Of a DNA stretch of 64,000 bases, positions 22,404-24,673 are shown one piece after another. The notes beneath the pieces are model-generated. The model ran no database searches and had not been told where the DNA came from. It saw nothing but the letters and a program-made list of their open reading frames with translations. Each line of letters opens with the position of its first letter. Positions within the stretch are counted from its first letter, which is position 1. The stretch comes from Piromyces finnis finn (taxonomy: Eukaryota; Fungi; Neocallimastigomycota), in the NCBI GenBank assembly GCA_002104945.1, contig MCFH01000051.1:186001-250000 (forward strand). The letters run 5' to 3'. A program made the position numbers and the translations under genes.

Positions 22404-23724
22404 TTAACTGTTTCTTAATTTAGCAAGACGTTCGGTTAATAAATCTTGTTCCTTATCACCAGTAACTGAATTGATTGTAAAAATAAAATATTTATAAATA
22501 ATTATTAAAAAAATATTATATAATATTAATTATTGTTTTTGAGCATAAATTATATATATGATATAAATATATATTCTTAATTTATTAAATGCCATATAAA
22601 ATAATACTTACGAATATGATTAGAAGCACCTGGTAATTCCATGTTCAATTCTAAACCATGTTCATCAGCGACTTGTTGCATTAATGAATCAACTTCTTCT
22701 TGTGGAGTAGTTAAGGTAGTAGTTTGACCCATAGATCCTTCCATAACTTGGGTTTGAACATCGAGATCTTCGAATTGGGATTCAAATTTATCCATAATAG
22801 CTGATATCTATTTTTTTTTTATTATTTTTATTTTGATAATTTAATAATGATATTAATTGGTCAAAATAATTAACAATTATAAATAAAAATAGCGATTTTT
22901 TATTAATATTAAATTATCGTAATTCTTTTTAAGGGAAATTATAATTGAAATAAAAACATATGTTTAAATAATTAATTAATAATAATAATAATAAAAAGTA
23001 CAGTACTTGTTCAAGGTTCATACTCTTCATAGCCTTATCCATACCCTTAACTAATGTACCCATACTTTTTGAGACACTTCTCATAGTAACTGCTGTTTGA
23101 ACTCTACTAGCTACAGCATCAATACGACTAGATAAACGTAAGAAGTTTAAAGCTTCATTCTTTTTTCTAATAGCATTTGAAGCATAAATCTTAGCACCTT
23201 CAGTATTACCTTGTTGAATAGCCTTTTTTATATAATAAAATGTATTGATTTATATAAATAATTTATTTCAGAGTAATTAGCAAATGCTTTTTTTTATATT
23301 AATATTTAGTATAATTTTTCTATTTCCTTTATTATTTGTTTTTATCATTTCTTAATATACTTTTTTTTTTTTTTTATCAAAAGTACCTTCTTTAATTTAT
23401 TTTTTTCAGCTGTTTCATCTTTTTGACATTTCTTAGCATTACGTTGAAGTTGCTTTGCAGTGAACTAGAAAATTTTAATAATTATTTAAAAAATATTTAA
23501 AATTAAAATGTATTTTAATCATTAATTACTGTATATTAATTATGAAAATAACTACCTTTAATTGGAATAAAGCATCTTTTTAAATAGATAAATTAATAAC
23601 AAAACAAAATTAAAGATAAAATGTTTTATATATCCATAAAAGAAATATAGATATAATCGTGTATAAAATCTTTTATATTTTTAATTATATAAAAAAGGAT
23701 ACTTTCCATATTTTTGGAACTCAT
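22404..23724 (-). CDS. DID2: ESCRT-III associated protein Did2/Vps46 (CHMP1 family), 6 exons
   Basis: Exons 23724-23703, 23575-23556, 23464-23387, 23222-23007, 22807-22612, 22465-22404 give [31 protein letters not shown]...[32 protein letters not shown]...[15 protein letters not shown]...[11 protein letters not shown], a typical CHMP1 sequence with C-terminal MIM1 helix. Confidence 0.97.
23576..23702 (-). other. Candidate U12-type (minor spliceosome) GT-AG intron, Did2 intron 1
   Basis: Donor reads GTATCCTTTTTT on the minus strand (U12 consensus RTATCCTTT). Degenerate branch candidate TTATCTTTAAT ~35 nt upstream of the AG. Confidence 0.6.
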
Positions 23725-23797
23725 TTTGTAATTTGTTTATTATATAAAAGAATTTAAAAAAACTATTCAAATACAATATTAGAAATTAGCATTACTT

Positions 23798-23838
<41 letters not shown>

Positions 23839-24627: not shown

Positions 24628-24673
<46 letters not shown>

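Follow-up and report, generated by a model that had tools for sequence, protein, structure and literature searches.

Intron 1 of CHMP1/Did2 in the gut fungus Piromyces finnis is, very probably, a true U12-type intron (we put the probability at about 0.85). We also consider it highly probable that this GT-AG intron is removed by the minor spliceosome and has been retained from the opisthokont ancestor. Because minor splicing in P. finnis has already been published (PMC10639083), intron 1 is one more example of the phenomenon and not its discovery. Minor introns, together with minor snRNAs, were described by Larue & Roy (2023) from P. finnis and Neocallimastix californiae (PMC10639083); the species and the phenomenon are the same as here, the CHMP1 gene is not named in their main text, and intron 1 is present in a public gene model of the kind that such surveys score. 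No paper linking CHMP1 to minor introns was found in the literature searched; the series of orthologous introns described below is therefore a small addition, and the P. finnis intron extends the short series of fungal minor introns by one well-supported case.

In its general features, the intron resembles U12-type GT-AG introns of animals and plants. It has an RTATCCTTT donor and a candidate T-C-C-T-T-A-A-Y-like branch motif complementary to U12, lies in phase 1 (that is, in a non-zero phase) and interrupts an old housekeeping gene.

Structure of the CHMP1/Did2 gene and the donor of intron 1

The CHMP1/Did2 gene has six exons on the minus strand and occupies positions 22404..23724 of the window, by which we mean the whole stretch of 64,000 nucleotides that was analysed. 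The window is extremely AT-rich (GC about 18%). Judged by sequence, the gene is identical to a public P. finnis model of 197 aa, ORX43634.1 (P0128 below), named charged multivesicular body protein 1b in UniRef. Its features are as follows.

23724..23703, minus strand: exon 1, 22 nt; ATG plus 19 nt, i.e., seven codons (MSSKNME) and the first base of an Asn codon
23702..23576, minus strand: intron 1, 127 nt, GT-AG, phase 1, GTATCCTTTTTT ... AAAAAG; proposed U12-type
23693..23702, minus strand: donor GTATCCTTTT, agreeing throughout with RTATCCTTT, the 5' splice-site consensus of U12-type introns
23575..23556, minus strand: exon 2, 20-nt micro-exon ATGCTTTATTCCAATTAAAG encoding (N)ALFQLK
23464..23387, minus strand: exon 3, 78 nt; translation found exactly in P0128
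23222..23007, minus strand: exon 4, 216 nt; Snf7 domain (PF03357 match), exact in P0128
22807..22612, minus strand: exon 5, 196 nt; Snf7 domain (PF03357 match), exact in P0128
22465..22404, minus strand: exon 6, ending with the stop codon TAA

The six exons add up to 594 nt, or 197 codons and a stop codon, and exons 1 and 2, as read in the window, together encode the N-terminus of the public model (MSSKNMENALFQLKFT). Intron 1 is thus already contained in the public gene model. The matches of exons 4 and 5 to PF03357 (Snf7) are each below the whole-protein cut-off, the exons being fragments. The exons of the window gene were compared one at a time, by reference, and the query for homologues was an uninterrupted ORF that occurs naturally in a transcript contig (L042:285-875). 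With this query 3507 homologues were found, all of them Snf7 proteins and many named CHMP1 or DID2.

The first-pass annotation of this DNA had placed an intron with a U12-like donor at 23576-23702, followed by exons of 20 and 78 nt. These coordinates proved exact, and both exon lengths were confirmed. The donor, read as GTATCCTTT, agrees with RTATCCTTT at all nine positions, and the terminal dinucleotides GT...AG are compatible with the U12 type (GT-AG or AT-AC). The annotation had also described the other donors in the window as lacking the CC; this holds for the four remaining donors of the CHMP1/Did2 gene, to which our comparison applies (GTAGTT, GTACTT, GTACTG and GTAAGT). The donor GTATCCTTTT can pair with AAAAAGGGCU at the 5' end of the U11 candidate described below (dG -7.2 kcal/mol).

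That an intron is needed upstream of exon 2 follows from the unspliced frame, which meets an in-frame TAA two codons away with no ATG between. The spliced junction itself, GGAAA|ATGCTTT, is carried by three transcript contigs of sister taxa (L042, L124 and L126). Among them, L042 is 97% identical to P. finnis in exon 4, and the other two come from Neocallimastix.

The mere frequency of the donor motif was rejected as evidence: RTATCCTTT occurs three times in the window and 3.0 times are expected from shuffles, so the 9-mer is at chance level. The two further sites (19348 on the plus strand and 34990 on the minus strand) are not donor-like. What is beyond chance is the presence of RTATCCTTT exactly at a donor that is confirmed by transcripts of sister taxa and invariant across three genera.

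Neither in intron 1 nor in the rest of the window did Rfam reveal an RNA gene at the gathering threshold. The CHMP1 promoter region is flanked at 23782-23836 and 24628-24670 by long (ATT)n/(AAT)n microsatellites, which are ordinary for the P. finnis genome.

The orthologous intron in gut fungi, other fungi and animals

Among gut fungi, the 10-nt donor GTATCCTTTT is invariant in P. finnis, Anaeromyces robustus, Neocallimastix constans, N. lanati and N. californiae, as well as in a tandem Neocallimastix paralogue. The intron sequence directly after the donor has diverged and cannot be aligned between the genera. Two internal islands are conserved across them, a hairpin block and, a few nucleotides downstream, the candidate branch motif.

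We fetched the genomic loci of CHMP1 orthologues and examined the same intron position, defined as phase 1, 5 nt before the Leu-Phe codons. Clearly U12-type introns were found at this site in the fungus Basidiobolus meristosporus (GTATCCTTTTAC...TGTCCTTAATC, with the donor GTATCCTTTT and a perfect TCCTTAAT), in the cnidarians Nematostella vectensis (GTATCCTTTTTA...TTCCTTGAC) and Acropora digitifera (GTATCCTTTTGT...ATCCTTGAC), and in a vertebrate chmp1b-like metagenome contig, L119 (GTATCCTTTTTC...TCTTTAAC). We take this contig to be non-human, as it is multi-exon and differs in sequence from human CHMP1B; its use was confined to reading the first intron. In position, phase and donor GTATCCTTTT these introns of CHMP1B-type genes are identical to intron 1 of P. 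finnis, and we regard them as orthologous. All of these genes but that of the vertebrate contig have a 20-nt second exon as in P. finnis, and the same micro-exon was revealed in Phycomyces and Allomyces. Unlike the P. finnis intron, the introns of Basidiobolus, Nematostella, Acropora and the vertebrate contig possess unmutated TCCTTRAY cores, except for the vertebrate one (TCTTTAAC). The exon boundaries had been suggested to match those of animal CHMP1A; the match is with animal CHMP1B-type genes, the type that was compared.

At the same site the intron is of U2 type in Spizellomyces (GTAAGT...CTAAC), Phycomyces (GTATGT), Allomyces (GTACGC) and several metagenomic fungi; Gigaspora and many Dikarya-like contigs lack it. 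The introns of the three named genera share position, phase and the micro-exon with the P. finnis intron but differ from it in their donors and in having branch sites of U2 type, which in Spizellomyces is CTAAC. These introns are examples of U12-to-U2 conversion, which gut fungi very probably did not undergo.

The first-pass annotation had suggested that the intron is ancient, and the presence of U12-type introns at the same phase-1 site in two cnidarians, the vertebrate contig and Basidiobolus bears this out. The simplest history suggested by these comparisons would be that CHMP1 intron 1 was already of U12 type in the common ancestor of animals and fungi, underwent several conversions to U2 type or losses within fungi, and was kept in gut fungi and Basidiobolus. 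It can therefore serve as a clean example for the study of U12-to-U2 conversion.

The tandem paralogue mentioned above lies on N. californiae contig MCOG01000212.1 (L133, L127). It is diverged (85% identity), keeps the donor GTATCCTTTT and the motif TTTATTCTTAAT, and has as its neighbour a gene with a zf-U1 domain. Two public N. californiae models, P0005 (YYFKFTAKQ...) and P0126 (MTISNLLKFTAKQ...), are without exon 1 and the 20-nt micro-exon; the genome contains the missing exons ahead of the annotated start, with the donor at L127:1656. Apparently, the combination of a U12 donor and a micro-exon defeated the gene predictor. The practical consequence is that such a combination breaks gene prediction, leaving the two models without their true N-terminus.

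Candidate minor spliceosome components in the genome

Whole-genome Rfam searches for U12, U6atac, U11 and U4atac yielded a single full-length match for each. The matches to U12 (66.6 bits, cut-off 53) and U6atac (52.1 bits, cut-off 33) are above the cut-offs; those to U11 (38.2 bits, cut-off 39) and U4atac (49.2 bits, cut-off 53) are just below them. The candidates have Sm sites and conserved cores. An earlier suggestion that P. finnis may retain a minor spliceosome thus agrees both with the presence of these four candidates and with the published work (PMC10639083). The coordinates of three components are as follows.

L010:1380-1618 (G000:C152, predicted start near 317393), plus strand: U11 candidate, extended; 239-nt RNA, fold z = -4.8
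L002:1501-1649 (G000:C112:211500-211648), plus strand: U6atac candidate, 52.1 bits; the sole candidate
L131:1393-1608 (G000:C1:1441045-1441119), minus strand: CHHC zinc finger exon RIVCPFNKKHIVSRKNYEKHRRRCE, Pfam zf-U11-48K, 27.9 bits

The U12 candidate retains the branch-site-binding box as GAGUAAGGAUAAU; it reads ...AAGGAU... in P. finnis vs ...AAGGAA... in human. The core of the U11 candidate, GUGCGGAAUCGAUAUCAAGAGAUUUCG...AAUUUUUGA, is nearly identical to that of animal U11, and a canonical U11 5' end, AAAAAGGGCUUAUG, is located about 120 nt before the point where the Rfam match begins. This arrangement suggests that U11 is expanded to about 236 nt and carries an AU-rich inserted hairpin, which would explain why its score falls just below the cut-off.

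The U6atac candidate is atypical. It reads GUAUGAGCCGAGAGA, and in comparison with human U6atac, which reads GUAUGAAAGGAGAGA, it has GCC in place of AAG. These bases occupy the positions that pair with nucleotides +6 to +8 of the donor, and the predicted pairing with the donor of intron 1 is weak (dG -2.9 kcal/mol). A search of the genome for a more canonical U6atac (a pattern with two mismatches, then Rfam on the two best loci) revealed none.

Of the protein components, PDCD7 (U11/U12-59K) had no Pfam match in the genome in an exon-by-exon search, which is insensitive across introns. The CHHC zinc finger exon is possibly part of a U11-48K orthologue; the fold occurs in other proteins too.

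Introns similar to intron 1 were sought with the genome-wide pattern RTATCCTTN{20,300}TCCTTRAYN{6,40}AG, which gave 295 matches vs 105 in a reversed control, a count heavily inflated by repeat families. Used qualitatively, the pattern shows that intron-like RTATCCTT...TCCTTRAY sites exist elsewhere in the genome.

A CCAATC box was observed upstream of U12 (L001, -103), U4atac (L011, -150) and U11 (L010, at about -134, on the opposite strand), and the U6atac candidate has CCAAT at about -92. The CCAATC box may be a shared promoter element, chance being an unlikely explanation at 18% GC. About 550 nt downstream of U11, at L010:2162-2325 on the minus strand, there is also a SNORD14-like C/D box snoRNA candidate (52 bits, cut-off 64).

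Branch site, acceptor and alternative readings

The signals at the 3' end of intron 1 are the following.

23629..23655, minus strand: 10-bp hairpin; the block of about 23 nt that contains it, TATCTATATYTCTTTTATRGATA, is shared by three genera and lies shortly before the branch motif
23619..23609, minus strand: candidate branch site TTATCTTTAAT, best U12 duplex window, conserved across genera
23599..23592, minus strand: TTATTAAT, a second branch candidate, nearer to the acceptor (17-18 nt away) and less complementary to U12
23576..23577, minus strand: acceptor AG; no other AG lies between it and the branch motif

The sequence TTATCTTTAAT and UAAGGAUAA of P. finnis U12 can form 9 bp, including one G-U, with the second A bulged at 23610, 34 nt from the last intron base. 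Its core, TCTTTAAT, agrees with TCCTTRAY at seven of eight positions and differs from TCCTTAAT by one C-to-T change; it is a candidate that is not significant in a single sequence. A loose branch motif was present in 29% of shuffles and the U12 duplex energy was equalled in 45%, and introns 4 and 5 of the same gene, which are of U2 type, score as well as or better than intron 1. The significance of the motif in a single sequence was therefore rejected as evidence, and the caution expressed about the branch site in the first-pass annotation stands.

In other gut-fungal genera the motif reads TTATTCTTAAT, which gives the common pattern TTATYYTTAAT. The eight orthologous introns of U12 type all have their best U12 duplex on a T[CT][CT]TT[AG]A[CT] motif and use the next AG as acceptor. 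The distance from branch to acceptor is 13 nt in the vertebrate contig, 17 nt in Nematostella, about 28 nt in Acropora and 32 nt in Basidiobolus; in gut fungi it is 33 nt in Anaeromyces, 34 nt in Piromyces and 60-73 nt in Neocallimastix.

The spacing between branch and acceptor in animal U12 introns is reportedly about 10-20 nt (work of Dietrich/Padgett and of Levine & Durbin), and the distance in P. finnis falls outside this range. A further difference from the U12-type introns of animals and plants is the C-to-T change in the branch motif, which is paired by a G-U wobble.

On the preferred reading, the donor GUAUCCUUUUUU would be recognised by the U11 5' end AAAAAGGGCU. U12 would then pair through GAGUAAGGAUAAU with UUAUCUUUA, leaving the next A bulged as the branch point at a distance of 34 nt from the acceptor. 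The 3' splice site would be the first AG that follows the branch, and catalysis would be carried out by U4atac/U6atac/U5. Both the dependence of intron 1 on the minor spliceosome and the identity of the branch adenosine are what we infer from the signals described. The distal, degenerate branch motif that is not significant singly, the atypical U6atac with its weak donor pairing and the absence of a PDCD7 match count against this reading.

As to the branch point, we lean slightly towards the distal assignment (TTATCTTTAAT) because of its conservation across genera, the first-AG regularity and the presence in Basidiobolus of TCCTTAAT at 32 nt without a proximal alternative. It is rather unlikely that the intron is of U12 type but uses the proximal TTATTAAT as its true branch, the distal TTATYYTTAAT being otherwise used or slow to diverge. 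A branch 17-18 nt from the acceptor does fit the canonical window, a similar ATATTAAC lies about 18 nt from the Neocallimastix acceptor, and the distal motif is not significant by itself. Nevertheless, the proximal sequence pairs more weakly with U12 (an A opposite G in the core) and is never among the best duplex windows; it has no clear counterpart in Anaeromyces, its equivalent in the Neocallimastix paralogue is only about 4 nt from the AG, and in Basidiobolus the perfect motif is 32 nt out with no proximal candidate, the motif of Acropora being at about 28 nt.

Two further readings dispute that intron 1 is spliced as a U12-type intron at all. According to one of them, the intron is of U12 ancestry, or resembles a U12 intron by chance, and is now spliced in gut fungi by the major (U2-type) spliceosome. 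Conversion of this kind did occur at the same site in Spizellomyces, Phycomyces, Allomyces and several metagenomic fungi, the branch motif is distant and degenerate, RTATCCTTT is at chance frequency in the window, and the donor of intron 4 pairs with the generic U1 5' end just as poorly as that of intron 1. We nevertheless consider it improbable: a converted intron would have no reason to keep the ten donor bases GTATCCTTTT across three genera and a paralogue at about 18% GC, all converted lineages altered donor positions +4 to +6, and the minor snRNAs are present. Moreover, C at +5 and +6, as found in the donor of intron 1, abolishes the contacts that a U2-type donor makes with U1 and U6. Even less credible is a wrong gene model, in which translation starts elsewhere and GTATCC is no splice donor in P. 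finnis. The junction transcripts do come from sister taxa rather than from P. finnis, and a second in-frame option, ATGA|GTTCCA giving M-N-A-L-F, exists on paper; but GTTCCA would make a poor donor, MSSKNME-N-ALFQLK is exactly what the spliced contigs of close relatives encode, the N-terminus of the public model agrees with it, and the unspliced reading stops two codons upstream of exon 2.

If the intron is of U12 type with a distal branch, a broader proposal can be made, which we put forward tentatively and at somewhat less than even odds: the minor spliceosome of gut fungi and Basidiobolus would use a branch site 30-75 nt upstream and then the first AG, i.e., a scanning-type choice of the 3' splice site, in contrast to animal U12 introns with their narrow spacing of 10-20 nt. 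The use of a distant branch may accompany the altered U6atac (GCC for AAG) and the expanded U11 of about 236 nt. If true, the distant branch and the first-AG rule would bear on how the minor spliceosome picks the 3' splice site, and this is the sole part of the analysis that might be of specialist interest.

The other conserved island of the intron, the block with its hairpin of up to 10 bp, was compared in the gut-fungal loci L122, L123, L125 and L127. The lone change in the Piromyces block, A to G, retains the pairing as G-U.
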